A stretch of DNA of 64,000 bases from Selaginella moellendorffii. Its lineage: Eukaryota > Plantae > Lycopodiophyta. Positions 6,696 to 60,653 of the stretch are shown here, in pieces. The notes below the pieces were generated by a model. The model did no database searches. It worked only from the letters and a program-made list of their open reading frames with translations, and had not been told where the DNA came from. The position numbers and the translations under genes were made by a program. How positions within the stretch are numbered: position 1 is the first letter of the stretch; each line of letters begins with the position of its first letter. Location: contig NW_003314359.1 of NCBI RefSeq assembly GCF_000143415.4, positions 525,250-589,249 on the forward strand. The letters are read 5' to 3'.

Positions 6696-7575
6696 TCCAA
6701 CATTTTCTTGTTCTTTGTTCCGATATTCTTTTCGAAAACAATAAGAGATTGATTTAGGGTTCCTGGCCAGGGAGCTTTATCGTCTAAGAAGCAAGCCTTA
6801 GGGCCAATCGGCCACAACTGCTACGCGGCTAACAACGAAGGTAGTAGAAGAAAATTTCTCTCATTTTTTAATTTCCAGAAGCGGCGGGGAGTCGCATACG
6901 GATCATTTTCTTCTGAATGATTGTTTCTGATTCTTTTTCTTCCATTTATTTTGTGAATTTTGGCAAGAAGATGCTGTTGACATGAACTGGGATGTTCGCC
7001 AGTGAGCCCCACGCACTTGGGTGGGAAATTTAGCAATCATGATGTGTGGTTTCTGGTCTACTTACGAAACCATCGCCTCTGGGTGATACTGGATTCGGCA
7101 AGAATTTGAAAATGTCCAGGATAACAACGTTTCTGGCATATCATTCTGCAACCCCAATGATTTGTGATTCCTTTTGTGACTTAATTCTTCCCTTTTGTCT
7201 ATAAAAGTCCGTTGAAGAACTCGATTGAGAATCAGTGGAGCAAAGTGGATGCCACATTGTATCTATACTATAGACGGCGCCCTGGATAAGGTATGAAGCA
7301 AGTGTATCCTCAAACAAAGCTAATGTACTTATTAAATGTTTATGTTTTGATTACATCCAATTTTGCTAAGAGCTTCCTTCCAGGCTTGGAGACGTTTTAT
7401 TACACCAGAAGTTCAAGGAACGATTTTCAAGCAGGCAAGTTCCACTGTGTGTCGGTAGTTTGCTATTTAATGAGCTTTTGCAATCACAGGAAACCATGCG
7501 TTCTCAAGTGGAATATCCGAACGCGTTGGGCAACGCGTGAGCGACATTTATGTTGAAGTAAGGCGACGAGATAGC

Positions 7576-8909
7576 ATGTCTTCCAGGGTATCATCAGAAG
7601 AGGGAGCTATGGAAGGACTTCTCAAGGGACTTATCAACATTGGCATTGAAGCAGTGCAAGATTTTGCCGCTGGAAACCAAAATGCGGACAATTCGCAGTC
7701 AAACGATCCAGATTCGAGAAAGGAGGAAGAGGCGCAACCGAGATCCAGGTGGGATAAGCACCCTCATACCAAGCATCAGCAGGTGAGATTTATCTTTAGA
7801 CTACATAGATCTAGCGAGTGCTCTTCTCTTCTTTTCGTTTCCAGGCACCAGATGAATACAAGCAAGCTTTCAAGAGGAATGCAAGCGATCAGGACTATTC
7901 CGAAGGTGTAGACTCTTCGTCTATAAACCTCGAACCAACGGACGAGGAACTTAGTGACTACCGCGTTGCTTGCAGCCGGCTTTGGGATCTCGACATCGAC
8001 CGCCTTGTTCCTGGCCGTGACTACGAGATCGACTGCGGAGATGGGAAGAGAGTCTACAGCAAGGAGGATATGGCTTCCAACGAGCTCTTCAGATTTGTCA
8101 GCCAGGACGTTTTCAAAAGTCCAACTTACGCCAGGTTCTACGCGCTGCTGGACAACTATCACGCAGATCAGGATGTTGCAGAGGAGTTCTCGTCGAGGGA
8201 AGAGCAAGAACAGATAGCTTTCGTGGAAGAGATAAGCAGGACGGCTCCAATCCAGTACCTGTTCAAGTACCTGGTTGCAAGCCGGGCCATCCAGTCGGAC
8301 AACTGGGAGGAGTTCAAGCGGATGCTCCAGCGGCTATGGTTCGATCTCTACAGGCGAGATAACACGAGAAACTCCTCTTCGGCGTTTGAGCACGTTTTTG
8401 TGGGAGAGATCAAAGACCGGGAGAACAACGATGAAGAAGTCTCCGGCCTCCACAACTGGATCCAGGTAGGCATTGTTCTTCTCAACTTCGTGACGGTCGT
8501 GATGGCTTTTTTTCCTCTCCTTGTAGTTCTACATTGAAGAAGCAAAGGGGAGCCTGGATTATCAAGGCTATATACTACCAAGGAGGCGCGGTGGTGACGA
8601 GGTAGAAAATGGTCCCAGAGTGTTCTTGTTTTAACAAACATCTCCACCTTTCTTTTTTTTGGAATTGTGCAGCCTGACTCGCATACCCGACTTGTCACAG
8701 TCCAGTTCACTTGGAATGGTGCTCGCAAGCCAGCGTCAAGCTCTTTCATTGGAGTGAGTCCCGAGTTTGAGCTAGCGCTCTATACTCTTTGCTTCTTCTG
8801 TGGTGACGAAGACAATCATTTGGTTCTGGGATCCTATGCTGTAAACGTGAAGTGCTACAGGTATGGAAGAAATCGAATTGGTTCAGTATTTCCTATAGCT
8901 GAGGAATGA
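7576..8909 (+). CDS. Poly(U)-specific endoribonuclease, EndoU/XendoU family
   Basis: Exons 7576(or 7609)-7782, 7845-8465, 8527-8601, 8673-8909, all GT-AG. Motifs SSSAFEHVFVGEIK, GLHNWIQFYIEE, LDYQGY, FIGVSPEFELALYTLCF. Confidence 0.93.
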
Positions 8910-8959
8910 AAAGTTTCGTTTCTAAGTTTCTTCACACTTTTCTTTTTCGCGAGAAAAGA

Positions 8960-9610
8960 TCAATCTCTTATTGTTTTTGAAAAAAGAATAATTGAAAGAA
9001 ATAATTATTGTTGGCTCGTACAAAGTTGGATCGGACTTGATCGATCGCAACCGCGTCCAAGAAGGAAGTCTTATCGAGCACCTCGTCAGGAACTGCCGGC
9101 CGCAACCCAAACATGGACCTCGCCGAGTTGAGAGTGGCGATGGTCTTGGCATTTGTCCAGCCGACATTTATCTGCCAGTGGATCAATCTGTGCAGGATCA
9201 CCATCACCTCGCCCCTGTTCATCACCACTTCATCACACTAGCGAACAACGGTTGTCCGCGGTGACAATGGCGTCGTAGACGCTCCCCTCCTCGACGTACA
9301 CCATCTCCGAGGCTCTGGGATGGGTGTGTGGAGCCTGGAGGGGATGATCCCCTCGGGAAGGAAATCGAGATGCAGAGTATTGAGGCCGGGATGTGCGAAA
9401 GGAAGATCGCGCCGGAGCGATCCATGTTTGTGGTGTTGGAGGAGTTCACGAGAGATGAAGTCGATGCTCGTGGCGAAGAATATAATTTTGGATACAGCCA
9501 TATCGTTTGGCTACGATAGGGATAGAATTGATCACACAGGCTTTGATTGAATGAATGAGATGGAATGGAGTGGTGCTTGGGAGATTAGTTCTTTATACAT
9601 ACCAAGGAGT
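8960..9610 (-). pseudogene. Inverted germin-like pseudogene (copy of 5945-6755 including promoter and 3' UTR)
   Basis: MAVSKII.., NSSNTTN, PGLNTL, ARSMFGLRPAVPDEVL in several frames with deletions (QDFC region lost) and frameshifts. Upstream CCATTCCATCTCATTCATTC(A/G)ATCAAAGC is shared with the intact gene. Confidence 0.93.
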
Positions 9611-10049
9611 TTCGTAGAAGAGTTCAAAGTTAATTTTGTCTCTTCTTGGTTCTTTATACCTTAAAATAAATTGGTGTGTTCAACATTTATTTTATGAGTT
9701 AAAACATCTTAGTCAGCCAACATTTTTATTCGACAGAATCTATTGAAAATAAAATTTGTATGTTAAAATGCTTAAGACTATAAAAAAAAAGTTTGTGTTG
9801 CATGTTGATTTCACATGCGTATGAATGCAAAGCAACATAACTCTGGATGCTCACTTATTTTTCATTGGAGACAATGATCTTGCTGATAGATTTTAATTAT
9901 CTTATATTCCCCGATAAGTAGTGTCATAGAAGTACCCATGAAAACAAGTTGGTAAAGCCACGTCAATTTATTTGTCATATTAGCATTTTATTTTTTGTTT
10001 TATAAATTTGATTTATCCACTGATAGCTAAACCAAATATTGTTCCAAAA

Positions 10050-10450
10050 GAGCACTAGCCATGAACCTCCACACACTGGCCACTGCTCACTACCAGCTAT
10101 GCCAATACAGCAACACCATTGCCACATTAGAGCACTTAAATTACAGCTTTTGACATTGCCATGGCAATCAAGTTCTTCACAAAGAACAAAGGTTTGATTC
10201 AGAGGAGTAGAATCCTAAAGTAACAATAAGTGCTTGAAGAGATTATCAACATTTTGATAAAGATTGTGTGATCCTACTGCTAGGCAGTGTGCTTGATACA
10301 ATTGAGCTAAAAACACAGTATAACCTTGAGCAGTAAAGTGTTGTGGCCATGATTGAGGCATTGACTCTTGGGAAGTTTAGGGAGGTGCTTGTCACTTTCA
10401 AGAGTGTGGTGATGAAAGTCAAGGTGGTGTTGCCTCTTGCCTATGTTTTG
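10050..10450 (+). pseudogene. Possible decayed TPR (kinesin-light-chain-related) gene fragment
   Basis: LHTLATAHYQLCQYSNTIATLEH and LGKFREVLVTFKSVVMKV resemble KLCR-type TPR helices; many stops. Confidence 0.3.
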
Positions 10451-11803
10451 CACATTTTTGTATATGTCAAATTTCATGGATCGTGAATTGAATTGAATCA
10501 TTCAAAGTAGATGACATGGTTTCATATATGTAAAAAGTGTTTGTCTTATTCAAATTTTATAATGCACCATTTTGATTAATATTATAGTAATCAATTCTGA
10601 TTTTGTGCATAATATTTTATGTGCAATTGAAAACAAAAAAAAAGGAATCTGCACATATATAAATAAAAGATGCACCCATGTGCAATTACACATTTGTTGC
10701 CATACTTTAGTACTACTCTTGAAACTCCAAAAAGCACTTTTATAGATTTTATACATCAATATGAAATTAAAATGCTTTAGGGTATCATCTCATCTCTTTA
10801 AAAACTGTGATAGAAAAAATAATATAAAAGAACCTATATTACCTAGATATACACACAAATCCAACTGGCAATAAGAAAAGAATTTTTTTCAAACATTGTG
10901 TTCTTGTCATATCCTTGATTTACTTACTGGTGCTAAGGATCTCTATTACTTCATCTGCACTTATGTACTAAATATTCTTAGAATATCTCTAAATTCCATC
11001 TTTTATCTAATTCTTTTATAATCAAGGTTTAATGCTAAAAATTATGTTTATGTTTGTAAATCCAAATTGACTGATAGATGTGCTCAAATGATCTTGCACT
11101 CCTCCACCTTTAGCCAACATTGCTACAAATAGATTTAATCACTGCCATGTGAGGTAAATGTCATACTATGGATTAAAGCATTTTATTTGTAACAACTTTT
11201 CTTTGACTGCAAAGCTCAATAAGTCCAAGCTAGATAATTTGAAGCTAGATTATTTGATCTTGCTGAGATCAATAGAATGCACTGAGGTTTGAAATTTCTT
11301 GTTCTCCCTAATTGTTTACATACTTGTGCTTGAGTGTTCTACAATTAATAACAAATAAAAATTATTATAGCCTAGAATTATTTTTTCAAATAGGAATAGT
11401 TCATCTATTTAGAATACAAATAAATACTAGTGCAATATAATTTTAAAATAAATAATAAAAATAATTAACTACATATAATCTATCCTTTCAAACCATTCTA
11501 ACTTATAAAAAAATTGTTATATCAAAATATCTATAGTATCCTTAATTCTAATGAAAAAGAGAAAATTAATTTCTTGTAGGAACACTTTAAAAAAGGCTTT
11601 TAAGGGTAATAAACATTAATATTGAAAAAAAAGTCGAACCAATTAAAAGTTTTTGGATATGAATTTTAAATAACAAAAATAAATTATATAACAAAACTTG
11701 CTAATCCTCTTAAATTATTTTCAGATAGAAAAAAATAATTAAAAAGGAGAAACAAAACCGAGTTTGAATGTGCATTCAGTTTGGAAGATCAAAGAAGATT
11801 AAA

Positions 11804-12463
11804 TCAAGCAAACACGGATCGGACCTGAGTGATGGTAGTGTTGTCGATAAAAAAGGTCTTTTCTAGCACCTCGTCGGGCACTTGGGGGCTCGATCCAAAC
11901 ATGGACCTCCCTATAAATTGCGTCCCCGCGAGCTGAGAGTTGAGCGCAGCAATGACCTTGGCATTGTTCCTGCCGACATTCATCTGCCAGTGGATCAATC
12001 CACGCGGAATTACCATCACCTCGCCTCTGCTCAGCACCTGTGCAAACAAGCGGTTGTCCGCGGTGACAATGGCGGCGTATACGCTCCCCTCCTCGACGTA
12101 CACCATCTCCGTGGCCCTGGGATGGGTGTGTGGCGCGATAATCCCCTCGGGTAGCAAGTCGAGCCTGGCCATGGAGAGGCCAAGGGTGTTGATCCCGGGG
12201 AACCTCAGCACGGTTCCAAACACTGCGCCCGCGCGATTCATGGCGGTGATGTTGGCCGGATTCACCATTTCCCTGTAGATGAAGTCCTCCACCGTGACGC
12301 TGGACGCGTTCCTGCATGGGAAGCCATTGACGCCCGGTGATGCGGTGAGATCCGCGACGCAAAAGTCTTGGAGTGGATCTGGGTCGGAGACCACTGCGCT
12401 GGCCAAGAATGCGATGATCATGGTGCTCAGAAGCAGGATTGACGAAGCGGGCGCCATGGCCAT
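11804..12463 (-). CDS. Germin-like protein (cupin), secreted, intronless
   Basis: MAMAPASS signal peptide, DPDPLQDFCVAD, GIIAPHTHPRATE, VIPRGLIHWQMNVG; TATAAAA on the minus strand at 12608-12614. Confidence 0.96.
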   Translation of the reverse strand: MAMAPASSILLLSTMIIAFLASAVVSDPDPLQDFCVADLTASPGVNGFPCRNASSVTVEDFIYREMVNPANITAMNRAGAVFGTVLRFPGINTLGLSMARLDLLPEGIIAPHTHPRATEMVYVEEGSVYAAIVTADNRLFAQVLSRGEVMVIPRGLIHWQMNVGRNNAKVIAALNSQLAGTQFIGRSMFGSSPQVPDEVLEKTFFIDNTTITQVRSVFA

Positions 12464-12911
12464 GGATCTAAAACTCGAGCTCCCTGGAACGAGGATTCTC
12501 AAAGCAAGCTCGATAAGCTCTGGAACAATTGGGACGAGATCAAATGATATGAGGATGGATGAATGAAATTGGAAGAATGAATGAAAATTGTGGTGAGAAG
12601 GATAGGCTTTTATACTGAGCAATTGGGATGCTACCATACAACACGCAAGGGAGAAATTCAGTGAAGTGAGCCTACATTTTTGTTTTATCTTGTGTAGCAA
12701 TTTTGAGGAGAACTCTTCTCCTCTGACCATATCACTGTCAAATTTAACTGCATGGAGTCCACACTCTTCAATGACTTTGACATGGTCTTATACACTGTGT
12801 TTGTTTATGTTTGGTCGTTGTTGTCTAATCTCCCTATACAATAGTTAAGATCTGAAATATCTTTTCTAATCAATCTTGTTTTCTTTAATGCCAGAACATC
12901 AAACAATATAG

Positions 12912-13600
12912 TCATCTTTGCCAGCACCATTTCCTCCTCCTTTGGAATCTCCTCACCTGGTACGCGTAGCCAAGCACGCCAAACACAATCGCGGCCACGA
13001 AGATGAATCTCAGCACCTTTCTCCTGCTGAGCCCCACGCCTAGAAATCCCAACAGCGGCCTCCCCGGGAGATAGGATCGCAACCGGCTTAGGTGGGAGGA
13101 GCGGGAAGGATGAGGCGACTTGGATCTTCGCCTCGGCCTCCCTCTCTACAAGTTTCTTTCGTTATGCAAACAATGTGTCGAGGTTTTCTCTTCTTACCCT
13201 TTTCCTCTCGGGAGCTGGCTTGGGTGGCGTCTCGGTGGCGACTTGGACATGCCGGTGGCCTCCTCCGAGCTCTGCGTGTTTTTGCAGAGCCATGCCCAGA
13301 TAGTACTCCTTGAGCTGGTTCTGCAAGTTAGACATGGCAATGGGGGATCATACATCGATTGAATCTCAATGCTTGACGAAAGAGGAAGGATTTGAAAGCT
13401 TGGAGTGGATTCTAGGAAAAAGAAGAGGAGGACAAGAGCGAGGGAGAGATTTACGCTACCTTTGGAGGCAATTCCACCTTGTGTTGCTGGAGCCATCGAA
13501 TCAAGTCCGTCTTCTTCATGCTCATGAGGCGCTTCTCGGTCACGGCCGACGGAGAGGTGAGCTTCTCCTCCCCAGCGGATCGATTTGGAACAATCCTCAT
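12912..13600 (-). CDS. Small 165-aa protein: LEM-like/HeH helix pair, basic region, C-terminal transmembrane helix (candidate inner nuclear membrane protein)
   Basis: Three in-frame exons 13600-13460, 13320-13198, 13145-12912 with phase-0 GT-AG introns of 139 and 52 nt. Translation MRIVPN..MKKTDLIRWLQQHKVELPPK/NQLKEYYLGMALQKHAEL..RKR/RGRPRRRSKS..VLRFIFVAAIVFGVLGYAYQVRRF..WQR*. Confidence 0.75.
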
Positions 13601-13789
13601 CGCCCTTCGCTTTTTTTTCCCCTCTTCCCGGGAAAAAGAAAATCAAACAGTTACGAAAGTTAGCCTCGCACCACAAGAGTCTCGAACCCAAATCCAGTTT
13701 CAAAAAGAAAAAAAATAAAATTTGGCAGAGCACAAAAATTTGGTTCAGTCAGGAAGATCGTGAAGATGGTCACTGGATGATCGTGATCG

Positions 13790-16298
13790 CTATGCTGGAT
13801 AGTTCTCGGCGGAGGTAACCAGGGGGCAAAACATGTTGAGAGAGTCGCAGCCCAGGACGTCCTTGTACTCCCTGTGGATCCAAAACTGGTCATAGACTTC
13901 GCCATCGCGGCTCTTCTTGTACTCGAACAGCAGCGACGAGCGATTGAACGAGGTGAGCTTGGTGTAGCCAAAGTCGCAGTCCTGATTCAAGCTCCACGAT
14001 GGCTTGCTCTCCGGGAACTGGCTCAGCCAAAACCCGCCGCCTCCCGCAACTACGTGAATGGTCCCGTTGAAAGTCCCGGAGTAGAAATCTTTCTCGTCAC
14101 TGGCAAGAACTTGCTGCACGATGGAGAAGCGCCAAGTATGAGAGAAGATCCAGCTATGGACAAAAACACGAAAGCACTCACGTTATAGAGTGGATAGGTG
14201 CGCTCGTAGTTGTGGATGTGGCCGTAGAAGGCGAGGTCCACCTTGTGCTTTTGCCACAGCTTCTCCAAGCTGTCCCTGCCGAATGGCTCGCCGGTGGTGT
14301 TCTCGGGAGCGTAGCACGACGAGTAGCCGAGGACGCGGTGAGAGATGAATACCAGCCACGGCTGCTTCTGCCTGTCCGCGCTCCGGAAGCAATTCTCGAG
14401 GAACTCGTACTGCTCCGTGCCGTCGCGCCAGTCGTGCTCCGAGTCGGCGATGCAGAAGCGGAAGAGACCATAGTCGGTTTTATACCTTGCAAGGAAAAAA
14501 AAAAACAACAAAACTGTGAATCAGCTAGCTTTCTCTCGACTTTAGAACTACAAACCAGAATTTGTCCCTGTTTTGCACGGGCATGTTGAACACGGTTGAT
14601 GAAACAACACCACACTCGCCTCCCGAGTCGGTGCTGTTGTAGAAAGAGCCAGTGTTTGGCCAATCTCGCTCATGGTTTCCACTGATTTGAGCAAACTTTA
14701 GATCGACAAAAGAGAAAGAAGAATGTAAAATACCTGACTGTCATGTAAGGAACTTTGGAAGACAAATTCTCAATCTGCTCCGTGAACTGATCCCACTCGG
14801 AGAGATATCCAGTTGCGTAGGATATGTCGCCAATGTGGAAGACAATGTCGATGTCGTTTATTTCGTTGTTAAGTGCGTCAGTTGTGTTCAAAGACCCCGG
14901 CTCAAAATCGAAGTACGTTCTCGATCCATCTCGCTGGTGCTGTTGAATTCGCACAAGTTGGTTTTGTAAGGATTTTTTTACAAAAAAAAAAGGAAGAAAG
15001 AGAAAACAAAAAACTTGTACCGTGCCCATATCACCGAATATCACAACTCGTTGCAAGGATTCTTGGCCAGGAAATGGGGGTGAATGAAAGTACATCTTTG
15101 GGCTCATGACAAACGAGGCATCCTGCAGCCTGTGACCAACTTGGAAGCTATACCTGCAGCGAAAAAAGAAAACACAAGAATGTTAAACTCGATGCATGTG
15201 ATAAACTTACCTTGTGGTTGGCCATAAGTCCGTCATAATCCCAGTATGGATCTGCCCAGGGTCTCGCCATCCGATTGTGGATGCCGGAGCTCCTTCAAAA
15301 CAACTGTTGGTTAAAAACAAAAAAAGAACTCCATAGCTAAACCAACATACCACACATATCTCCACGACTCACTGACAGCGTGGTGGCCGGATGAGCAACA
15401 AAGGAATACTTGTCATCGTACACCTGCCATGTTATAAATGGAGCTGCCTCGCTGGGAAGGTAATTGCTCGTCCAAGTCACAGTCATCTGTGAGATCCTAG
15501 AGCTTCTTTGTTTGATATAACAGGATCAAGCGATGACAATTTACCTCGTTCCAAGCCCTTCCCTGAGCTAGCCTCGGGTACAAAGGCATCTTCAAGTCGT
15601 CAAAGGTGACCACGTTAGACACGGCGATCAGCACCGGCTGCTCAGTCGGAGGAGTTACAGATGTTAGATAGAGAGCTGCGATCATCTTACCTCCGCAAAG
15701 CCGGAGAACAAACCAAAAGAAAAGTTTGCGCGCTGGTTGATGAGACGGAACGTGAGCTGTCCACTGCCGCTGCTCACGTAGTCTTGCGACTGGTTTGCGT
15801 ACTGAAACTGAAAGGACAAAACCGAAAGGTATTACGTCTAATGAGTGACACCAAGAAGTAGTAGTACCTTGATGGGAGCGCTGCAGATGTAAGGTCCCCA
15901 AGCGGGTATTCTTGTCTTGACCACGCAGACGGAGGAGCTGCGAGCGATCAAAACCAAAGTAGAAGAAAACTCTTTTCAGTGTGAAGATCATACTTGAATA
16001 CTGGTGGTGAGAAGACACCGATCCAGTCCTGGTCGCTCGCTCCAGAGGCCCTCTGGAATTGCACAAGGACGTTTCCAGCATGTTCTTTCTGAGGGACAGT
16101 AAAAGGAAGAATCAGTGTCCGTGAAACCACAAATTTTGCTACCTCCTTGCCAAGCACATCGGGAGAAGCTCGCACAGACGAAGAGTTGTCAATGTTTATC
16201 ACGGCGCGATCAATCGGCAGTCTCGAAGGCAAAGAATGCTGCTGCGAGAGCAACACCAAGGAGCAAAAGTTAACAACAATGAAGAATATGATTTTCAT
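13790..16298 (-). CDS. Purple acid phosphatase, large nucleotide pyrophosphatase/phosphodiesterase type (PAP1/24/27-like)
   Basis: Signal peptide MKIIFF, DWIGVFSP, PLYPRLAQG, GWRDPG; metal motifs GDMG, GDISY, GNHE, HRVLGYS, GHIHNYER; multiple short GT-AG introns. Confidence 0.93.
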
Positions 16299-17041
16299 TG
16301 TCGCGCAATTCCTACTGCAGCAATGCCCTGATATATATTTACGATGAAATGCCTTAGAATGCATATTTCCTGTCTAGATTAGAAAATGCGCTTTCTTCTA
16401 ATAATAACTCGTAAGAAACCTGTTTGTAGATTTTCCAACGCTTGAAACACTAGCTCTTACGAGCCACTTTTGCAATTCTGAGAAATAAAAACGGTTACCA
16501 GGCAATTGACCCAGCAAAACACAAACCATTACAAGTTTTGCGCTCCGAGAAAACGATGCTAGCTAGCAAGAAAAAAGAAAAGCAAAGAAACAGAACCAAT
16601 CCAGAAACAACGAGGGAAACCTTAGGTACATTTCTACGGATATGAGGCATCACCCTGTTTTCTAGCAGAGACCGCTATGCCCGTGTTGTCGACTTTTCTC
16701 GATTGTGTCAGCTCCAAAGGTCGAGGATCGCTTCCGGAGGTCTACGGCTGCGTGAGAGGTGAGCTCGCAGACGAAGCCACAAGCGAACTAAGAACGAAGA
16801 CAACCAGCGCGCAAGAAGCGCATTCAAGCTGCAGAACCTTGCGTTTCGTGAGATCCCAGAAAACACGAAGAAACTTACAAACACTGGATGGACAATTCGG
16901 GTACGAGCTCTCGCCTAGTTGATCATGAGCACGTAAAACGCGAGGTCCACCCTGTGCCATTTGCCAGAGCTTCTCACGAGAAAGGAGAAAAAAAGAAAGA
17001 ATCCAAAGCAGTGCTAACCAACAAGCAAATAGTAGGCTTTG

Positions 17042-19243
17042 CTAGATGCTAGACAACAAAACGTAAGGCGACGTAGTACCTGGTCCCAAGCGCACGGCAT
17101 TCTGTGCGATGCTAGCGGCGAGCTCCTTGTTGCCATGGATCCGGCACGCTCCCAGCAATCCCACCCAGTCGTGGAGATCCGGCTCCAAAGGCATGCTCTC
17201 CATCAAATCCCTGGCATCCGCCAGGTACCCGGCGCGGCCGAGCACTCCGATCACGCATCCATACTGCTGCTTCTTGGGCCTCCAGCCGTGATCCACGCTC
17301 ATCGCGCGCAAGCATCGCACAGCCGATTGGAGATTCCCGCCGTGGGCGTGCGCCGCCAGCACGCACGCGAACGTCGTCTCGTCCGCCCCGGCGCCCGCCA
17401 TCGCCATTCCCAGGAAATAGGGCGCAAGAAGCTCCACGCTGGAAGAATGTGCCGCCAGCATGGCGTTCCACGAGACCACGTTCCGCGCTGGCATCGCGTG
17501 GAACGTCCGCGTGGCGGACGCCAGGTGCCCGTTTCGGGCATATGCGCACAGCATGGCATTCCACGCCACCATTTCTCTTCCTGGCATTGAGTGGAACAAC
17601 GCCACCGCGCTTCCCAGGTCGCTGTTTTGGGAAAACCCAGTCAGCATGGCTGTCCATGCGACAACGTCCACGTCAGGCATTGCGTGGAAGAGTTCCACGG
17701 CCTTGTCAAGATGCCCTGTCCCGGCATATGCTGCGAGCATCATTGTCCACGCGACGCGATCGCGCGGTCCGGGAATCTTCTCAAAGAGGTCTTGGGCTTG
17801 GGCGATTTGGGATGCCTGGATCATCGCGGAAAGCACCGTGGTCCACGACGCGAGATCTTTGCTGGGCATTTTAGAGAACAATCTCTTCGCCTCTTGAAAT
17901 TTCCCTTCTTGGGCACTTGCCGCTAGGAGCGCATTCCAGGAGAAAAGATTGTGGGCTTTCATTCGATCAAAGAGAGATTTCGTTTCTTCGATCCCCCGCA
18001 CCGCCGCCGCCGCCGCCGTGAGCATTGCATTAAACGAGATCATGTTGTGACAGGGCATCGCGTCCTCGAAGAACTCCCTGGCGCGATCGTAGCCCCCATT
18101 TTGAGCAATCGCCGAGAGCATCGCGTTCCATGACACAATGTCCCTCTCCTCCATGGAATCAAAGAGCCTCTGCGCGTCATCCAGGCGCTCTTCCTGCGCG
18201 ATTGCCGAGAGGAGCGAGTTCCACAAGATGAGATCGCGCTGGGGGGCGGATTCGAACACCCGCCTGGCCTCGTCCACATGCCCACTGGCGGCGATCACTG
18301 CCGTCCACGTGCCAAGATCCCGCTCGGGCATCCGCTCAAAGAGCTCGCGCGCTCGCTCGGCAGTCCCACGGCGTGCGTACGCATTGAGCAGCGTGTTGTA
18401 GGTAATTAGGTTTCGCGCATTCATTCCACGGAAGAGGGCGAGCTCGTGATCGATCCACCCGGCCTCGCCCAGCGCTCCGAGCATGACGTTGCCCGTCACG
18501 AGATTTCTCTCGGGCATGGCGTCAAAGAGCGCGATTGCGGATTTGAGGCGGTCGTTCTGCGCTAGCGCCGAGAGCATCGAGTTCCAGGATACGAGATCTT
18601 GCAGCGGCATAGCGGTAAAGATTCTCACGGATTCGTGCAAATGCCTGTTATCGGCATATGCAGCTAGCATTGCGTTCCAGGTCGCGATGTCCCTGTGAAG
18701 CATAAGATTAAATATATCTCTTGCTTCCTTCACGTTTCCATATCTCCCAAGAACTGCGATGATTGCTGTGCTAGAGAAAGAGTCCGTGAAAGGCATCTGG
18801 AAATATATTCTTATTGCCCCGTCAAGATCCCCTATTCGGGTATATGCCGCAAGCATAGTGGTCAGTGAAATGATTCCCTGTTCGGGCATAGCATCAAACA
18901 CCATTTTCGCATCATCCATTCTTGCAAACTTGAGAAACGCGGTGAGAATGCTAGTCCAAGAGACAAGATCACGGTCTGGCATGGAATCAAACACCAGCTT
19001 GGCCTCGCGAATATACCCGTTTCCGGCATATGCCGAGAGCATCAAGTTCCACGAGAAGATGTCCTTGGCGTCAATGGCATCAAACACGCGCCGAGCGTGA
19101 TCGATGCCGCCGCACCTTCCATACATTTGGATGAGGAGGTTAGAAACAAAGACGCTTGGGGGCGAGTCCGCAAGAGAGCAATGTAGTTTCTTCGCATCCG
19201 CTAGAGTTTTACATGACTTAATATTTGAGATCAAAGTGCTCAT
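17042..19243 (-). CDS. PLS-class PPR protein dominated by short ~31-aa repeats, ending in an E domain (no DYW)
   Basis: 733-aa intronless ORF with repeated FxxMPxRDxVSWNAML motifs and an E domain LLGACRIHG..PYVLLSSI. Confidence 0.93.
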   Translation of the reverse strand: MSTLISNIKSCKTLADAKKLHCSLADSPPSVFVSNLLIQMYGRCGGIDHARRVFDAIDAKDIFSWNLMLSAYAGNGYIREAKLVFDSMPDRDLVSWTSILTAFLKFARMDDAKMVFDAMPEQGIISLTTMLAAYTRIGDLDGAIRIYFQMPFTDSFSSTAIIAVLGRYGNVKEARDIFNLMLHRDIATWNAMLAAYADNRHLHESVRIFTAMPLQDLVSWNSMLSALAQNDRLKSAIALFDAMPERNLVTGNVMLGALGEAGWIDHELALFRGMNARNLITYNTLLNAYARRGTAERARELFERMPERDLGTWTAVIAASGHVDEARRVFESAPQRDLILWNSLLSAIAQEERLDDAQRLFDSMEERDIVSWNAMLSAIAQNGGYDRAREFFEDAMPCHNMISFNAMLTAAAAAVRGIEETKSLFDRMKAHNLFSWNALLAASAQEGKFQEAKRLFSKMPSKDLASWTTVLSAMIQASQIAQAQDLFEKIPGPRDRVAWTMMLAAYAGTGHLDKAVELFHAMPDVDVVAWTAMLTGFSQNSDLGSAVALFHSMPGREMVAWNAMLCAYARNGHLASATRTFHAMPARNVVSWNAMLAAHSSSVELLAPYFLGMAMAGAGADETTFACVLAAHAHGGNLQSAVRCLRAMSVDHGWRPKKQQYGCVIGVLGRAGYLADARDLMESMPLEPDLHDWVGLLGACRIHGNKELAASIAQNAVRLGPGTTSPYVLLSSI

Positions 19244-23389: not shown

Positions 23390-25576
23390 TCACCTCGACG
23401 ACGCCATGGGCTGCAAGCTCTTGGACAAGCCCGCGATTCGCATGGTCGCGCAGCCCAGGCAGCCCAGCAGGCCCTGCTTGTATGGGAGGAAGGTTTTGCG
23501 GCGCATCTCCTCGGAATTTACCCGCTGCTGGGACTTGTAGTGGAGCTCGTGGAGGGATATGCCTCCGCCACCTTGCGCCGCCGCCGCCGCCGACGACGAC
23601 GAGGAGGAAACGTTGGTGGTGCCGCCGAGGATGTTGCCGCTGCTGCTGCTGTTGATGCTGTTGTTGCGGCTCCGCCGGGGGCTGACGTTCCGGGACGAGC
23701 ATGCACTGGACGCTGCCGAGTTTGAGTAGTAGAACTGATCGCCGCCACCTTTGCTGTGGAGATTGAGATCGGTGAATCTCGCGGATTGGAAGTCCATACC
23801 ACCACCGCCAAGTTTGCCACCCACGATCGGCCCACTGTGAAACATTGATCCCCCGCGACCGCCACCTTGCCCTCCTCGCCGGTGCGCTACGTGATAGTTG
23901 AGCCGCTTGTTCTTGATCGTCGCGTCCGGCAGCCGGCCCTTGTGCGGCCTTGCGGCCATGGCGGGGAACTCCGCCTCGGGGACGATGGATCCGCTGTGCA
24001 ATCGCCTCGCGGAGCTGTAGTAGCCGCCGGTGGATCCTCCACTGTGCTGGAGGTCGAGGCTGTGGAGTCTCTTCTTGTGGATGGCGATTCCCTGGAGATT
24101 CCCCGATGCCGAGGACGAGGACGGCGTCTTCCGTGCGGCGCTCGCGGCGGTGAATCGCTTGCTGTGATCGCCCACCAAGGATTTCTCCACCAGCCTCTTG
24201 GTGAGAGCCGAGGAGTCGAGCTTCTTGCCGAGGGGCTTGCTCGGAGGAACCGGCAAAGATGGCGGAGGTGGTGGCGGAGTCGAATCCTTGGCCTCCTTGG
24301 ACTCCTTCGCTGTGGATTCTGCGCCTTGGATGGTTTTCTTGCCCTCCTCTGCCTTGGAAGAGCTCGGCCCCGGCTTGTTCTTCTTGTGCATGCTACTCAG
24401 GTGGAGCAATTCCCTCAGCGTCCGACCTTTGGAGGAAGTTCTCGCGGGCCGGGGGATCTGGTGATCGCCGGAGGAGGACGAAGAGGAATTGGAGGTGGCG
24501 AGCGATGGCGAGGAGGAATTGGAGGAGGCGGGCCGGCCCATCATGAGCATCATGGACTGGTACTTCTTGAGCAGCTGGAGCGGCGAGAGGGACCGCGGGG
24601 GTCCCCGGCTGGCCGTGGAGTCCGACGTGGCGGAGGCCGAGATGGAGGAGGAGTCCGAGATGGAGCCCGACTTGATCATGGTGGCGCCGCACAGGCTGCC
24701 CATCACCGCGGATTTCATCCGCCCGGGCGACGCGGATCCGCCGGCCTTGCGCGCGGATCTGGGCGACGGCGGCGCCGCGGCGGAGGAGGAGGAGCAGTGG
24801 TCGCTGGAATCCGTGGAGGCGATGGTGTTGGAGGAGCCGCTCGAGTCCGAGGAGGTGAGCTGGGGCGGCGGGATCTTCATGGGCAGGAGCTGGCCCTTGA
24901 AGAAGAGCTCGTCGGCGGAGGACATCTGGGCGGAGATCGTGGAGTCGGAGTCGGACATCCGGCTGGACGAGAACTCGAAATCCGAGTCGGCATTGAAGAA
25001 CCCTAGCGCTGGCGATGGATCCCGCGACGCCGCCGCATTGGCTCCAAAGATCATCTTGGGCGTGCCCGGCATCTCGTCCCAGATCCCGCCGCCCTTGCCC
25101 GACCGATCCTTGTTCCGCCGGTCCGGGCTCGTGGGCGCGCTGAAGTAGAAGCCCGCCACGCCCCCCATCTCCGCGTCCTCCATCATCGCCTCCTCCTCCT
25201 CCTCTTCCTCGCGGCGGCGCTCTCCGACAAGAACACTGGGCAGCGCCGCCACCACGCCGCCGCCGGATCCGCCACCGCCGCCGCCGCCGCCGCCGCCATC
25301 GAATCGCGAGTGGAACTGGAACTCACATTCCGTGAAGCTGAATCCGCGCTGGTGGTGGTGCTCCGGATTGGCGGCAGCGTGGAGCTTGTGATCGCGCGGC
25401 GGGCTGGACGGCGCCGAGAAGTAGTAGTAGAGGCTGTTCTTGCTCGTTGTCCCGGTGTTCTTGGCGGTGGTGATCTTGAGCGCGCTGGTGGTGCCACTCC
25501 TGCTGGGGCTGGATGGCGCGCTCACGAATGGAGTGGAGCAAGAGCTCCCGGCCTCGCTCTCGCAGTGATAGAACAT
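23390..25576 (-). CDS. Ser-rich DUF1645-type plant protein, intronless
   Basis: [39 protein letters not shown] and C-terminal [25 protein letters not shown]. Confidence 0.82.
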
Positions 25577-28059: not shown

Positions 28060-31000
28060 TCACCAATAGTCTTTGCAAGAGCATGAACCGTTCTCGAAGT
28101 GATGAAAGCGAGTGGAGTCCCTGACCACGATTTTCCGGCCCACGATCCTGGAGATAAACTTGGCGGCCGCGTGACAGTCGACGCAAGCTCGCAAGTTCTT
28201 GACGATGTGGAGCGGCGTCCCAGGCGGTGTGGATATCAAGCCGTAAGCAATCGCCAGCTTCTCGCTGTGGTAGCACAGCATTTGCTCCTTTTCTTCCTCC
28301 TTGACGTTGTGCAGCACCATCCTCATGTCCGGGACGTAGCCAGCGTCCTTCATCTGCTTGCTCAGCCTCTTTATCTCCGCGGCGATGAGCTCCTCCTCGG
28401 GATGAGACTTGTCCCCGGCCACAAACTCGTGCACCGTGTCGTTGATCTCGATATAACTGCAGCCTGGGTTCTTCCTAGCGGCTCTCCGGTTCCTCGTCTT
28501 TCGAACGTCGTCCCATCTCCCAGCCTCCGCGTAAACGTTGGACAGAAGCGTCACGGTCGAGTGCTCATCCTCCGATTCCAGCTCGAAGAGCTTGTCCGCT
28601 ACTCGAGCCGCTCGCTTCGTGTCGTTGTGTAGCTTGCAGCCGCTTAGTAGGCTCGTCCAGGCAACCGCGTCCGGCAAGAACGGCATGTCGTGGATGAGGT
28701 TCTCGGCAGCCTCCAGCCTCCCTGCTCGGCTCAGGAGGTCTACCATGCAGAGAAAGTGCCGGTAGTCTGGAGCGAGGCCGTGGTCCCCGACCATGGAGAG
28801 GAAAGTCTGGACGCCTTCCTTGAGCATCCCTCCATGGCTGCAGGCCGAGAGAGTGCTCACCATAGTCACGTCATCGGCTGCCAAGCCTTCCTGTAAGAGC
28901 TCCCAGAAGTGCTCCAGCCCCGTCCTCGAGTGACCGTGCTGAGCATAGGCGGCGATGAGAGTGCTCCAGGATACCAAGCTCTTGTCACGGATAGCCGCGA
29001 AGACCCCCACTGTATCGTCGAGGCTGCCGCACCGGTTATACATGTTCATGAGCGAGTTCTCCAGGACGACGTCGGCCTTGCACCTTCCGGAAGCGATGAG
29101 CGCGTGGACTGCCTTGCCTTGACGCTTGGCACCGAGAACAGCACAGGCGCTGAGGACGTTGCTGAGCGTGATCTCGTTTGGAGCGACGTTTTCTAGCTGC
29201 ATTTGCTTGAAGATGTCGAGAGCGTCCTTGGCCTGTCCATACTGCACGTATGCCACGATCAGTATGTTCCAAGTTATCACGTCCCTCGTACGCATTCTCT
29301 CGAAGACCTGCCTTGCCTCCTCCAAGCTGCTGCTACACTTGGTATACATGTTGAGAAGGACGTTGCCGATCACCAAGTCCGACTCGTAGCCGTCCTCTCT
29401 CACTTTCCTGTGGATGGCTCTTCCCTGCTCCAAGTCCTCCAAGTTGGTGCAAGCGGTGAGGAGGCCAATGAAAGTCACCACGTTTGGCTTTGGATCGTTC
29501 GGTCCCATCCGTTGGAAAAGCTCGAGAGCCTGTGTAGCGGCACCCTGCTTGGCATACCCGGAGATCATCGTGTTCCAGGCTATCACGTCCCTGTTCTTGA
29601 GCCGATCGAAAACTTTCCTGGCCGACTCCAAGCTTCCACACTTGGAGTACATGTTGATGAGCGCATTCTGGACAATCGAGTCCGAGGCATAGCCGCTTGC
29701 TACCGTGCGAGCCTCGATTTCCCTGCCTTGAGAGATGTCTCCGACGACCGTGCACGCGTACAAAGCACTGGAGAAGGTGATTGCATCCGGCTTCATTCCT
29801 TCGGGCTCCATGGCGTGGTATAGCTCGAGAGCTTTCCTGGGAGACCCGAGCTGTGCATAGGCCGTGATCATCGTTGTCCATGCACACGTTGTCTTGGTCG
29901 CCATCTTGTCGAACGCTCTGCGGGCGTCTTGCAAGCTCCCACACTTCGCGTACATGTTTACCACCGTGCCGGTGACGAAAGAGTTTAGATCAAAGCCGCT
30001 GCCCTCGAGCGCTGCGTGGACGAGCCTTCCCTGCTGGAGCGACTTCATAGTAGCGCAAGCTTCGAGCACGGACATGAAAGTGGTAGCGTCCCTCTTCACC
30101 TCCTGCGGCTCCATCTCGTGGAAGAGCTCGAGCGATTTCTCGGGACGGCCATTGTGGCAGTAGGCCGAGATCATCGCGTTCCACGACACGACGTTTTTCG
30201 TGGCGAGCGAGCTGAAGGCCGCCTCAGCATCCTTGAGGCTCCGGCACTTCCCATAGGCGCTGACGAGAGTAGTCCCGATGATCAAGTCGGCCGCCATCTT
30301 TTGCTCGAGTATGTCGAGATGGAGCATCCGCAACTCCGAAAGAGATCCAAGCTTCGAGCAAGCGTCGAGAACAGCCAGGAAAGTTGGCTTGTCCGGCTTG
30401 ACAGACTTGGAAACCATGTCCTGGTAGATCTTGAGAGCACCCCTGTGATCCCCGTTTCGCGAGTAGCCAGCGATCAGTGCGTTCCAGGTGACCAAAGTTT
30501 TCTTTCCCATCTCATCGAAGGTCTTCCGGGCGAGCTCGAGATCCCGGCACCTGGCATACATGGTGATGAGCGCGGTGCCGAGGATGATATCAAACTCCAG
30601 CAGCCGGGTCTCGAGGATCATCGCGTGGAGGAGCTGGCCTTGCTTGAGATCTTTGGAGCTGGAGCACACCCCGATCGCCACCACAAACATCGCTCCATCC
30701 GGCCTCAATCCTTCCAGCACCATCCTCCGGTAGTAGCCAAGCGCCTCCCGGTAATGCCCATTCCGGGCAAATGCCGCGACGATGAGCGTCCAGGAGACCG
30801 AGTTTGGATGCTCGATCGCGTGGAAAACCGCGAGAGCATCGGCGACGCTGCCGCATTTGCCATACATCTGGACGAGCAGATTCTCGACGTAGATGTGCAT
30901 CCGGCGCTGCTCGAGGATGTGGGAGTGGACGAGCTTACCCTGGGCGAGCGATCGGCGATGGCCGCATTCTTGGAGGAGAGAGCTGTAGGATGCGCCCGCG

Positions 31001-31176
31001 CTTAGGGCTCGCGAGACGCCGTCGAGGTCGGCGAATTTGCGGGCGTAGCTCTTGCTGGAGATCCTCTCGGGATCATCCTCGCTCGATCCCGCGAACGCTG
31101 CGAGGGAATGGAGACCCCGGCGCTGGAGCTGTGAGGACGCTGCTGCTCGTTTGCTCGCCAAGAGCAAGAGGAGCAT
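28060..31176 (-). CDS. PLS-E1-E2-DYW PPR protein (organellar C-to-U RNA editing factor)
   Basis: P-L-S triplets, PG box (KNPGCSYIE), HSEKLA, CVDCH and terminal CSCKDYW; transit-peptide-like N-terminus. First in-frame ATG is at 31176. Confidence 0.96.
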   Translation of the reverse strand: MLLLLLASKRAAASSQLQRRGLHSLAAFAGSSEDDPERISSKSYARKFADLDGVSRALSAGASYSSLLQECGHRRSLAQGKLVHSHILEQRRMHIYVENLLVQMYGKCGSVADALAVFHAIEHPNSVSWTLIVAAFARNGHYREALGYYRRMVLEGLRPDGAMFVVAIGVCSSSKDLKQGQLLHAMILETRLLEFDIILGTALITMYARCRDLELARKTFDEMGKKTLVTWNALIAGYSRNGDHRGALKIYQDMVSKSVKPDKPTFLAVLDACSKLGSLSELRMLHLDILEQKMAADLIIGTTLVSAYGKCRSLKDAEAAFSSLATKNVVSWNAMISAYCHNGRPEKSLELFHEMEPQEVKRDATTFMSVLEACATMKSLQQGRLVHAALEGSGFDLNSFVTGTVVNMYAKCGSLQDARRAFDKMATKTTCAWTTMITAYAQLGSPRKALELYHAMEPEGMKPDAITFSSALYACTVVGDISQGREIEARTVASGYASDSIVQNALINMYSKCGSLESARKVFDRLKNRDVIAWNTMISGYAKQGAATQALELFQRMGPNDPKPNVVTFIGLLTACTNLEDLEQGRAIHRKVREDGYESDLVIGNVLLNMYTKCSSSLEEARQVFERMRTRDVITWNILIVAYVQYGQAKDALDIFKQMQLENVAPNEITLSNVLSACAVLGAKRQGKAVHALIASGRCKADVVLENSLMNMYNRCGSLDDTVGVFAAIRDKSLVSWSTLIAAYAQHGHSRTGLEHFWELLQEGLAADDVTMVSTLSACSHGGMLKEGVQTFLSMVGDHGLAPDYRHFLCMVDLLSRAGRLEAAENLIHDMPFLPDAVAWTSLLSGCKLHNDTKRAARVADKLFELESEDEHSTVTLLSNVYAEAGRWDDVRKTRNRRAARKNPGCSYIEINDTVHEFVAGDKSHPEEELIAAEIKRLSKQMKDAGYVPDMRMVLHNVKEEEKEQMLCYHSEKLAIAYGLISTPPGTPLHIVKNLRACVDCHAAAKFISRIVGRKIVVRDSTRFHHFENGSCSCKDYW

Positions 31177-31242
31177 ATTCTGCCCTGGCAAGGAGAATAT
31201 GCCATTCGTCGTTTGCCCCTTTTTGCCGCTTGAGAAAGATAT

Positions 31243-52953: not shown

Positions 52954-53058
52954 CCATCGCAAGAACCCTAGATAATTGCTAGCAACATGGAAATTCAACG
53001 AAGGCCGTCGATTCAAGAATATCTGACGGTTGGAAATGAATCGGGGACCATTTACATT

Positions 53059-53850
53059 CACCTCTTCTCCCTCGTGACGCTAATGTTCTTCATCACTTCA
53101 CACACCATGAAGGCAACCCCCACGCCCGTAAAAACCTTGAGGTACTCGGGCAAAATCCCCCTGTACAACCCAGCGTAGCCTCGGTTGAGAACAATGTGCC
53201 TCGCAATCCCAGGCTTGTAAGCCGGTGTCTATCTCCGATCGCCCTCGAGTTGAATCCTTCTCTTTACCGAATCGATCGGAAACACCGCTGAAAACAGGAA
53301 CGATGGCGATCAAACGTAATCGATCTTAAGACGCTTACCTGTTGAGGCAGCAATTCCTGCTACTCCACCGGAGATTGGACGACTCGGGCCTTAAAGTAAA
53401 CATGCTCCGAGGGCTCGAAACTAAGAAAAAATCCACCTTTAAGCGTTCCAGTAGTTGTAGAGAGTATCATACATGCAGAAGTTTATCACAATCGTTTGGG
53501 CCTACGGACTGGCAGGACTCAAGTCTATGGCGTTTTGCAGGGATAAAAAAACAATAAGCTCTTGAAGAACGTACCCCCTTTGGTACGTCCTTCGGGCATC
53601 TACCACGCACTTTCCACAATCCATCAACAAGAGAGCTTTCTTGGCCTTTACAAGGGGCTCTGGCTGACGCTTTGTAATCCTCTATATTCGAAACTCCACG
53701 CTTCCACTATTGGCCTTTACAAAGCGTTGGCCAGAGCCCCTGTAAGCTAAGGGGCTCTGGCCGACGCTTTGTAAAGGCCAAGAAAGCTCTTTTGTTGATG
53801 GATTGTGGAAGTTCCGTGTAGTGCTTTGAGGTTGTCTGCAAATCGGTCAT
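53059..53850 (-). pseudogene. Mitochondrial substrate carrier (SLC25) pseudogene, C-terminal part, internally inverted and duplicated
   Basis: Minus strand: IVINFCMYDTL, SGGVAGIAAST, AVFPIDSVKRRIQLEG (PxDxxKxR signature), GLYRGILPEYLKVFTGVGVAFMVCE with in-frame stops. The segment GIYHALSTIHQQESFLGLYKGL lies on the plus strand. Confidence 0.8.
53612..53810. repeat. Nested inverted repeats forming a long hairpin
   Basis: 53710-53741 pairs with 53750-53781 (one G-U, 8-nt loop); 53612-53653 pairs with 53769-53810. Confidence 0.92.
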
Positions 53851-59723: not shown

Positions 59724-60653
59724 ATGAATACTAGAATAAGTTTTCTAGTTGTATTTATAACTTTTTGCTATGCTCAACCACCTCAAACAAGATGGATTGG
59801 TGGTGTTGGTCATTTTGGTAATAACCATGTAGTAAGAATTATAAATAAAATTAGGGATCTTATTGCAACTATAGGTGATAATAATCAATTTATTAGAGGT
59901 GAGTTTGGATTTTATCTTCAGAATGTTATTAATGCTGGTTATCAAGAAGTTTTAATTAGAATTCATATTGTACCTGCTGGTTTTACAAATTTTAATTGTC
60001 CTCATCTTCCCAGAAGTTTCATGTTTAGTGTTGATTATATGAGAAATACCTTCATAGATATTTTAAGACTTTTAGAATATCATGCACGTATTACTGGTGC
60101 ACAATTAATTGGAACAGTTTATAGATATTTTGCAATTGATTTTGGTGGATTAGGAAATTCAGTAAGAGATTTACAACAACCTTATCCATCTCTAGAATAT
60201 CCAAAAGGTTTGCCAGAGGATAGTGATCCACCTCCTAATCTTTTAAATGTTGATGTTGATAATTCACATTGCTGGCCATATAGAACACACCTAATAAATG
60301 GTCCTCTCTATCTTACTGGAACATATATAATTAATGGAAATAGTTTAATATCATTTAATAATAAATTTAAAGCAACATTAAATGATTGCAATTTAATTGT
60401 GGAAGATTTAAATAAAAAAGAAAGTGTATGGTCTACAAAATCTATAAAAATTGGTATATTTTGTTTTCTTCACCGTCAACTTGATGGTCATTTACTTATA
60501 AAAGATGATAATGAAAATATAATATGGAAAAACAACATATATTGTAAAAGTTGTTTCCTTTTTGCTATATTTACAGTTGAAGATAATGGATATTTAACTG
60601 TATCATCTTATATAAAAACTACAAAAAAAATAATTTGGAAGAACAAGTTTTAG
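59724..60653 (+). CDS. Secreted protein: unknown ~180-aa N-terminal domain + C-terminal bulb-type (GNA-like) lectin domain
   Basis: Uninterrupted 309-codon ORF in very AT-rich DNA; signal peptide; three B-lectin subdomains (LNDCNLIV..VWST, QLDGHLLIKD..IIWK, EDNGYLTV..IIWK); Pro-rich linker. Confidence 0.75.
   Translation: MNTRISFLVVFITFCYAQPPQTRWIGGVGHFGNNHVVRIINKIRDLIATIGDNNQFIRGEFGFYLQNVINAGYQEVLIRIHIVPAGFTNFNCPHLPRSFMFSVDYMRNTFIDILRLLEYHARITGAQLIGTVYRYFAIDFGGLGNSVRDLQQPYPSLEYPKGLPEDSDPPPNLLNVDVDNSHCWPYRTHLINGPLYLTGTYIINGNSLISFNNKFKATLNDCNLIVEDLNKKESVWSTKSIKIGIFCFLHRQLDGHLLIKDDNENIIWKNNIYCKSCFLFAIFTVEDNGYLTVSSYIKTTKKIIWKNKF

Follow-up and report, generated by a model that had tools for sequence, protein, structure and literature searches.

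Could a small membrane-anchored protein, laid out like emerin and LAP2 of animals, link chromatin to a membrane in a lycophyte? The question is raised by a gene in a 64,000-nt stretch of the Selaginella moellendorffii genome (RefSeq assembly GCF_000143415.4, contig NW_003314359.1, positions 525,250 to 589,249 of the forward strand), which corresponds to S. moellendorffii scaffold GL377663.1 and which we call the window. On its minus strand, between positions 13600 and 12912, three exons join into 498 nt that form an uninterrupted open reading frame (ORF) of 165 codons plus TGA. A preliminary description of this DNA saw here a hidden gene with the architecture of emerin and LAP2, and took its product for an ancestral nuclear-envelope tether retained in a lycophyte. 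The interpretation that we favour, and hold tentatively, is that the gene specifies a Selaginella-restricted, tail-anchored protein that would tether DNA or chromatin to a membrane, and that it is an analogue of the animal nuclear-envelope tethers.

The mechanism we propose is as follows. A protein of 165 residues, counted from the first ATG (ATG1), or of 140 residues, counted from Met26, would expose a module of about 40 residues shaped like HeH, SAP, LEM or Rho-N domains, followed by a disordered linker in which Pro, Arg and Ser abound and an AT-hook lies. The C-terminal helix would presumably be inserted into the membrane post-translationally, so that the N-terminus faces the cytosol or the nucleoplasm. 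The AT-hook would grip the minor groove of AT-rich DNA, with the helix-loop-helix module assisting, and would double as a basic nuclear localization signal (NLS). If a short-tailed splice form is made, the protein would reside in the endoplasmic reticulum (ER) and the inner nuclear membrane.

A three-exon gene and its sister copies

The gene structure is simple. Exon 1 (13600-13460, minus strand, as are all features of the gene; 141 nt, codons 1-47) opens with ATG1 at 13600-13598 and contains two alternative in-frame starts, Met26 (13525-13523) and Met28 (13519-13517). Exon 2 (13320-13198; 123 nt, codons 48-88) continues the N-terminal module with its second helix, and then encodes a linker rich in Gly, His and Pro and the first part of a basic patch. 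The AT-hook, a Ser/Pro/Arg-rich linker, the transmembrane helix and a basic tail follow in exon 3 (13145-12912; 234 nt, codons 89-165 and the TGA at 12914-12912). Intron 1 (13459-13321; 139 nt, GTAGCG...TTGCAG) and intron 2 (13197-13146; 52 nt, GTAAGA...TTGTAG, 36.5% G+C) are both of the GT-AG type and in phase 0. The exons have 55-60% G+C and the introns 37-45%, around a window average of 46%.

The exon and intron boundaries given in the preliminary description, and the strand, are thereby confirmed. Its N-terminal string, its basic segment and its one C-terminal hydrophobic helix are all present in the spliced product, as is the stretch RKRRGRPRRRSKS, and the overall layout of N-terminal module, basic patch and single C-terminal transmembrane helix matches the predicted protein. 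It had also pointed to a CTAAC immediately before the first acceptor. This motif is present (13331-13327), but its A lies about 7 nt from the acceptor, nearer than is usual for a branch point, and the motif reads TTAAC in one sister copy (L004, below); we therefore do not count it as evidence.

Within the window the gene occurs once, as judged by tblastn. When proteins were searched by word index for the N-terminal 100 residues of the spliced product, two matched, both hypothetical proteins of S. moellendorffii: SELMODRAFT_406014 (P0001, 150 aa, 97% identical), from locus L001 on GL377569.1, and SELMODRAFT_414039 (P0002, 106 aa), from locus L002 on GL377587.1. The proteins of these sister loci, EFJ34564.1 and EFJ25236.1, are annotated as hypothetical. 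When the Joint Genome Institute (JGI) models of the two sister copies are rebuilt, their introns 1 and 2 are identical to those of the window model. Gene order at L001 and L002 is as in the window, with a purple acid phosphatase, the small gene and a germin-like protein in succession. A fourth copy, L004, lies unannotated on GL377569.1 at 1.33 Mb. The window copy itself (in locus L003, which is exactly window 6804-17457) is also unannotated, GL377663.1 having no gene call between the phosphatase and the germin. The gene is thus hidden on this scaffold, as the preliminary description had it, but not in the genome, where two sister copies carry annotations. A literature search on these locus tags and accessions returned no mention of them.

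Four blocks of phosphatase, small gene and germin are present in the S. moellendorffii assembly, two of them on GL377569.1 and one each on GL377663.1 and GL377587.1. At L002 and L004 the phosphatase is truncated or missing and the small gene is damaged. The L002/L004 block looks like a decaying partial segmental duplicate that is present in both haplotypes. We infer two paralogous loci with two haplotypes each, one intact (the window and L001) and one decaying (L002 and L004).

The pattern of substitutions indicates that the frame encodes protein. Both introns keep their GT and AG dinucleotides in all four copies. Exonic substitutions among the copies comprise 12 synonymous and 9 non-synonymous changes, for a ratio of non-synonymous to synonymous rates (dN/dS) of 0.24 (binomial P=0.0012, with the neutral site ratio as the null); over the part of the frame that begins at Met26 the counts are 9 and 6 (dN/dS 0.21, P=0.003). 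The two intact copies, the window and L001, differ by five synonymous changes, one non-synonymous change and one in-frame 9-nt indel, a deletion in exon 2 of L001 that removes TPP. The other two copies are broken in different ways. L002, which carries three of the non-synonymous changes, has a 1-nt deletion in exon 2 at codon 77, and its product loses the basic patch and the transmembrane helix. In L004, 34 nt are inserted directly behind ATG1 and codon 22 is a stop, but the frame is open from Met26; its two intron deletions, of 84 nt in intron 1 and 12 nt in intron 2, are wholly intronic. We interpret these data to indicate purifying selection on the frame where it is intact, on counts that are small but consistent.

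The L004 insertion (L004:3891-3924) is the exact reverse complement of window 12872-12905, a segment 7-40 nt 3' of the stop codon. A short piece of the 3' flank has thus been duplicated, in inverted orientation, at the 5' end of the gene.

The damage in L004 also bears on where translation begins. The first 25 codons (window 13523-13600) hold three synonymous and three non-synonymous changes, the stop in L004 included, and the frame from Met26 is kept. Given this pattern, the start codon may be that of Met26 or Met28; the protein would then have about 140 residues, and the first 25 codons would lie outside it. The Selaginella annotation should be corrected here: two of the four copies carry no gene call, and both the start codon and the last exon are in doubt.

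We regard the gene as probably real and coding. The alternative is an orphan ORF, young or in decay, without maintained function: a lineage-specific open frame of the sort that gene finders occasionally report, in which the likeness to DNA-binding modules is accidental. We consider this unlikely, since the frame has a dN/dS of about 0.2 (P about 0.001-0.006), with five synonymous changes to one non-synonymous in the intact pair; the exonic indels of the intact copies are in frame and the intronic ones are not so constrained; and the splice sites are kept in all copies. To this may be added the confident, compact module that AlphaFold2 predicts from the single sequence, which is unusual for random ORFs. 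(Here and below, the query for AlphaFold2 and for the exhaustive HMMER search was the sister allele P0001, which is 97% identical and has the same exons 1-3; AlphaFold2 was run on the single sequence because there were no homologues for an alignment.) The orphan explanation gains, on the other side, from the restriction of the gene to Selaginella, with no relative outside the genus among 1.84 billion proteins and two sister alleles as the only matches of the word search. Two of the four copies are disabled, the window copy and L004 are unannotated, the sister models have no RefSeq XP accession, and no family or fold match is significant. Membership in Logan or transcriptome-derived protein clusters was dropped as a gauge of expression, as the control germin also lacks such members.

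The C-terminal helix, its tail and the AT-hook

If the gene is coding, what holds its product to a membrane, and which membrane would that be? The predicted transmembrane helix, VLRFIFVAAIVFGVLGYAYQ (12957..13016, residues ~132-151 of 165), has a Kyte-Doolittle mean of 1.79 over 20 residues; its best 19-residue stretch reaches 2.07. AlphaFold2 places a C-terminal helix at 126-147 (P0001 numbering), with a predicted local distance difference test score (pLDDT) of up to 91. The layout is that of a tail-anchored protein: a single transmembrane helix 14 residues from the C-terminus, and a polar, acidic N-terminus without a hydrophobic stretch. A Pfam scan of the C-terminal part found no MSC domain; a match of FeoB_associated to the transmembrane helix was rejected as chance.

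What follows the helix depends on splicing. When exon 3 is read through, the protein ends in the tail VRRFQRRRKWCWQR (12915..12956), which has a net charge of +7 and is free of substitutions in all four copies. A strong alternative donor, CAG/GTGAGG, with its GT at 12956-12955, lies just after the transmembrane helix and serves as the donor of a third intron in the JGI model of L001. It would lead to a possible fourth exon of 9 nt, GGAGATTAG (12825..12833), which reads 'GD*' and follows the acceptor TGTATAG. This is the last exon of SELMODRAFT_406014 (P0001), the product of which ends in '..YQGD'; the AG of the acceptor is altered in L002.

The two forms would probably differ in their target membrane. 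In mammalian tail-anchored proteins, highly charged tails direct to peroxisomes and moderately charged ones to mitochondria, and proteins with the tail removed or neutralised go to the ER (PMC5450235). Plant tail-anchored proteins of the mitochondrial outer membrane carry a dibasic motif in tails of 3-8 residues (PMC4154396). A tail of +7 after a helix with a grand average of hydropathy (GRAVY) of 1.8-2.1 favours peroxisomes or mitochondria over the ER, so the read-through form does not resemble an ER or nuclear-envelope protein. The spliced 'GD' tail would send the protein to the ER, and hence to the nuclear envelope, by default. Use of the alternative splice would thus probably change the target membrane.

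The protein could instead sit on the surface of an organelle (the peroxisome, the mitochondrial outer membrane or the plastid outer envelope), steered there by its basic tail, with the module and the AT-hook facing the cytosol and serving, for example, in RNA binding or as a general basic adaptor. Both targeting rules are in line with this, given the charge of VRRFQRRRKWCWQR and the hydropathy of the helix before it (GRAVY 1.79-2.07), as are the lack of substitutions in the tail in all four copies and the origin of the closest fold, the Rho N-terminal domain, in an RNA-binding protein. We nonetheless think an organelle location unlikely. The plant dibasic rule is for tails of 3-8 residues and the tail here has 14; the rules come from mammals and angiosperms and not from lycophytes; the JGI model splices the basic tail off; and an AT-hook with an NLS-like patch fits the nucleus better.

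That patch, ERKRRGRPRRRSKS (13116..13209, residues 85-98), is encoded across intron 2 and comprises an AT-hook core. It had been described as an NLS, and it is NLS-like, but the AT-hook core had been overlooked. Arg-Gly-Arg-Pro with basic flanks is the defining motif of the AT-hook, known from HMGA and AHL proteins, which binds the minor groove of AT-rich DNA. The segment RKRRGRPRRRSK (residues 86-97) conforms to this definition, with an RGRP core between Arg/Lys flanks in a region of pLDDT ~50. The DNA of the patch is identical in all four copies. Ours is a motif-level call, Pfam AT_hook giving no match to the patch; the Pfam model spans 13 residues and commonly misses AT-hooks. Residues 67-128, rich in Arg, Pro, Ser and Gly, are predicted to be disordered, and about 35 disordered residues lie between the patch and the transmembrane helix. 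HMGA and AHL proteins similarly have an RGRP core amid Arg and Lys in a disordered region. In contrast to AHL proteins, the Selaginella protein has a single hook and no PPC/DUF296 domain, and it is predicted to be membrane-anchored. Given an AT-hook together with an HeH-type module, DNA binding is the most economical guess at function.

To carry an NLS-like patch and motifs of the DNA-binding type ahead of a C-terminal anchor would also suit a regulator that is stored at the ER or another membrane until proteolysis frees its AT-hook part for the nucleus, as in the membrane-bound NTL and bZIP factors of plants; the ~35 disordered residues that precede the helix are in line with this. We find this improbable. 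It is an analogy only, with no recognisable transcription-factor domain or protease site to accompany it, and it depends on the same premises of expression and localization as does the tether interpretation.

The N-terminal module and its ancestry

The preliminary description aligned the N-terminal part of the protein by eye with the LEM-like domain of LAP2. What kind of domain is this? The module (13264..13519, residues ~28-66) is encoded on both sides of intron 1. AlphaFold2 predicts a helix at 22-27, a helix at 30-39, an 11-residue loop (HKVELPPKNQL) and a helix at 51-64(67). For the module, the full-length model has a pLDDT of 81-89, and a model of residues 16-72 only has an average of 80.7.

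Foldseek searches of the PDB with both AlphaFold2 models returned, at the top of both lists, mainly neighbours of one structural class, that of helix, extended loop and helix, at best E-values of 0.85-1.7, none of them significant. The nearest fold is the Rho N-terminal domain, with a query-normalised template modelling (TM) score of 0.59-0.64 and a root-mean-square deviation (rmsd) of 1.8-2.0 over 45-46 columns. The emerin LEM domain is also near (target-normalised TM score 0.69-0.72, rmsd 2.1-2.4), as are the SAP domains of MKL1, PIAS1 and Tho1, the C-terminal domains of MANF/CDNF and the SAP region of 3'hExo. The top 50 matches do not include the LAP2 LEM-like structures 1H9E and 1GJJ. By its predicted shape the module would suit the HeH/SAP/LEM superfold, with LEM, SAP and Rho-N domains as neighbours, at E-values that are all at least 0.85. 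The SAP and Rho N-terminal domains, of the Pfam HeH clan, are the best structural neighbours and are nucleic-acid-binding modules of helix, extended loop and helix. The Selaginella module differs from them in having no Pfam match and a Foldseek E above 0.8; its loop has Pro-Pro and does not have the glycine that is conserved in SAP. Judged from the models, a module shape of the HeH/SAP/LEM type is an even bet or slightly better.

Sequence comparisons do not narrow this down. Pfam was scanned with the exon products one by one, with the joined module, and with the basic and the C-terminal regions. Thymopoietin (PF08198) matches the module at E=0.028 with 14.5 bits, and the whole protein with 10.5 bits, where the gathering score is 28.6; the alignment spans profile positions 19-42 of 48. 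For LEM (PF03020), HeH (PF12949), SAP (PF02037) and Rho_N there is no match at E<=10. A significant match to a family of the LEM/HeH clan was thus not found. The LAP2 string in the preliminary description is exact, being identical to residues 10-43 of 1H9E chain A. Aligned with it ungapped, the module has 11/34 identities, a local score of 38 and a shuffle P of ~1e-3, for one pre-chosen comparison. The likeness to LAP2 is weak: a consensus of the tetratricopeptide repeat (TPR) fits the same segment equally well (local score 39, P ~1e-3), in a comparison that is indicative only. No LAP2 sequence was found at E<=10 when phmmer compared the module with PDB sequences; its only matches were to methylglyoxal synthase and the designed protein CTPR3, at E ~1. 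With so weak a Thymopoietin score, and with LAP2 no better than a TPR consensus, sequence alone cannot place the module, and there are no grounds for naming the LEM-like family in particular.

The stretch that resembles the TPR consensus (..ALELDPNNAEAWYNLGNAY..) is QHKVELPPKNQLKEYYLGMALQKH (window 13466-13264, residues ~38-63). Through scores that are summed over repeats, this resemblance pulls in bacterial TPR proteins, which calls for caution among users of such matches.

Might the module then be the relic of a TPR-type helical repeat, and not of HeH type at all? The HMMER search did return the bacterial TPR proteins P0004 (E=1.7e-5) and P0005 (E=3.5e-4), each over five repeats, CTPR3 appeared in the PDB search, and the consensus scored 39 with P ~1e-3. 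The E-values, however, are summed over many repeats of the target. The match itself is one partial stretch of 26 residues that straddles two units, where TPR proteins have 34-residue hairpins in tandem, as a rule at least three, and one unit alone does not make a stable domain. The 11-residue loop predicted by AlphaFold2 is not the tight turn of a TPR, and no TPR structure is in the top Foldseek lists. We judge a TPR origin to be the least probable of the explanations considered here.

The same comparisons bear on true descent from a LEM-like or HeH ancestor, in which case the gene would encode an inner-nuclear-membrane tether kept since early eukaryotes and lost in seed plants. Canonical LEM domains are reported to be confined to Holozoa, and LEM-like and MSC domains go back to the last eukaryotic common ancestor (PMC5630835). 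Thymopoietin is the only Pfam family that the module matches (E=0.028, below threshold), and the ungapped alignment to LAP2 10-43, 11/34 identical, has a V-x-L-P ... K-x-x-Y pattern. A helix, an 11-residue loop and a helix fit the published LEM and LEM-like folds, with emerin LEM near, and plant MAN1 is without the N-terminal module (PMC9980628). Counter to this, the Thymopoietin score is 14 bits under the gathering score, LAP2 is missing from the top 50 Foldseek matches and from phmmer at E<=10, and the TPR consensus matches equally. There is no MSC domain and no second transmembrane helix, unlike in the ancient HeH-MSC proteins, and no intermediate homologue in another plant, alga or other eukaryote among the 1.84 billion proteins. 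We therefore consider it very unlikely that the protein is a true LEM-like/HeH descendant, or a functional inner-nuclear-membrane tether with a much-diverged ancient module of this kind.

The search for relatives leads to the same view. Over 1.84 billion representative proteins, HMMER with P0001 found the sister allele P0002 and three spurious matches: a Ser/Pro-rich repeat protein, rejected as a low-complexity match, and P0004 and P0005, rejected as homologues because their scores are summed over five repeats. No relative outside Selaginella was found in this search, in which a 40-residue module at ~30% identity would stay below significance, so that ancestry at the level of the domain would escape it. 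Full-length orthologues in other annotated plants would have shown up. To speak of retention would require copies in outgroups, and the gene is known from one genus; the ancestral part of the earlier claim finds no support among these proteins. We see the gene as a lineage-restricted analogue of nuclear-envelope tethers; homology to them is not shown.

How close is the analogy? Emerin and LAP2-beta share with the Selaginella protein an N-terminal helix, long loop and helix, a long disordered basic region and a single transmembrane helix near the C-terminus, and the LEM-like domain of LAP2 binds DNA directly (PMC5630835). The Selaginella protein is, however, much smaller, has an AT-hook in place of a second LEM domain, ends in a strongly basic tail when read through, and has neither a Pfam LEM match nor a chain of homologues leading to animals. 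The HeH-MSC proteins (yeast Heh1/Heh2, Src1, MAN1/LEMD2) likewise place an N-terminal module beside an NLS-type basic stretch and a membrane anchor, and serve in membrane anchorage and chromatin tethering (PMC5630835, PMC3337167). They have two transmembrane helices and a winged-helix MSC domain, as against one helix and no MSC here. Plant MAN1 keeps the transmembrane helices and MSC and has lost the N-terminal module (PMC9980628, PMC7285967), which agrees with the premise of the preliminary description that flowering plants generally are without N-terminal LEM/HeH proteins of this kind. The plant NEAPs resemble the Selaginella protein in having a nucleoplasmic part, an NLS, a C-terminal transmembrane helix and a link to chromatin (PMC9980628). 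They differ in their long coiled coils and in their occurrence in angiosperms and gymnosperms; the Selaginella protein has no coiled coil and no sequence relation to them, and has an HeH-like module and an AT-hook. No paper on a plant protein that joins an HeH- or SAP-type module to a tail anchor was found in literature searches, among them one directed at the nuclear envelope.

Weighing the tether interpretation, and its meaning

Looking across the entire analysis, a lineage-restricted tether of DNA or chromatin remains our preferred interpretation, as a possibility short of even chances, and a number of observations weigh against it. The sister models have GenBank EFJ accessions but no RefSeq XP accession, and the neighbouring germin has one, a difference that faintly suggests that they were dropped from a later, evidence-based annotation. 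The frameshift in L002 and the early insertion and stop in L004 disable two copies, the +7 tail points away from the ER, the Foldseek matches are not significant, the Thymopoietin match is far below its gathering score, and the TPR consensus fits as well as LAP2. A further point concerns the space upstream: from the phosphatase stop codon (13790-13792) to ATG1 there are 189 nt (window 13601-13792), a gap so short that the promoter and 5' untranslated region (UTR) of the small gene would overlap the 3' UTR of the phosphatase.

The rest of the window holds genes of other kinds. Three are long, intron-less pentatricopeptide-repeat genes, all on the minus strand (17045-19243, 28063-31191 and 50407-53061), one with E and DYW deaminase domains and one with an E motif; a large set of RNA-editing genes is typical of Selaginella. 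On the plus strand lie an XendoU endoribonuclease exon (7818-8534), a WD40 segment (34773-35675), a leucine-rich-repeat protein of 718 aa (48211-50364) and an ORF of 309 aa without a Pfam match (59724-60650), and on the minus strand an ORF of 728 aa with a weak match to DUF1645 (23393-25576).

What would the small gene mean for the biology of plants? If its product is targeted to an organelle, or is not expressed, it is merely another lineage-specific small ORF. Plant nuclear-envelope proteins have been described as being without an N-terminal LEM/HeH chromatin-binding module (PMC9980628), and the Selaginella protein, with its tail anchor, AT-hook and HeH-shaped module, would be a simple and testable candidate for such a chromatin link in an early-diverging vascular plant; it would also show the emerin/LAP2 layout as having arisen or survived in a lineage other than animals. 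Were it, as we consider very unlikely, a functional inner-nuclear-membrane tether with a much-diverged LEM-like/HeH module of ancient descent, it would be the first plant protein to join an N-terminal HeH-type module to a membrane anchor, a combination that would either have survived in a lycophyte or have been rebuilt there with an AT-hook.

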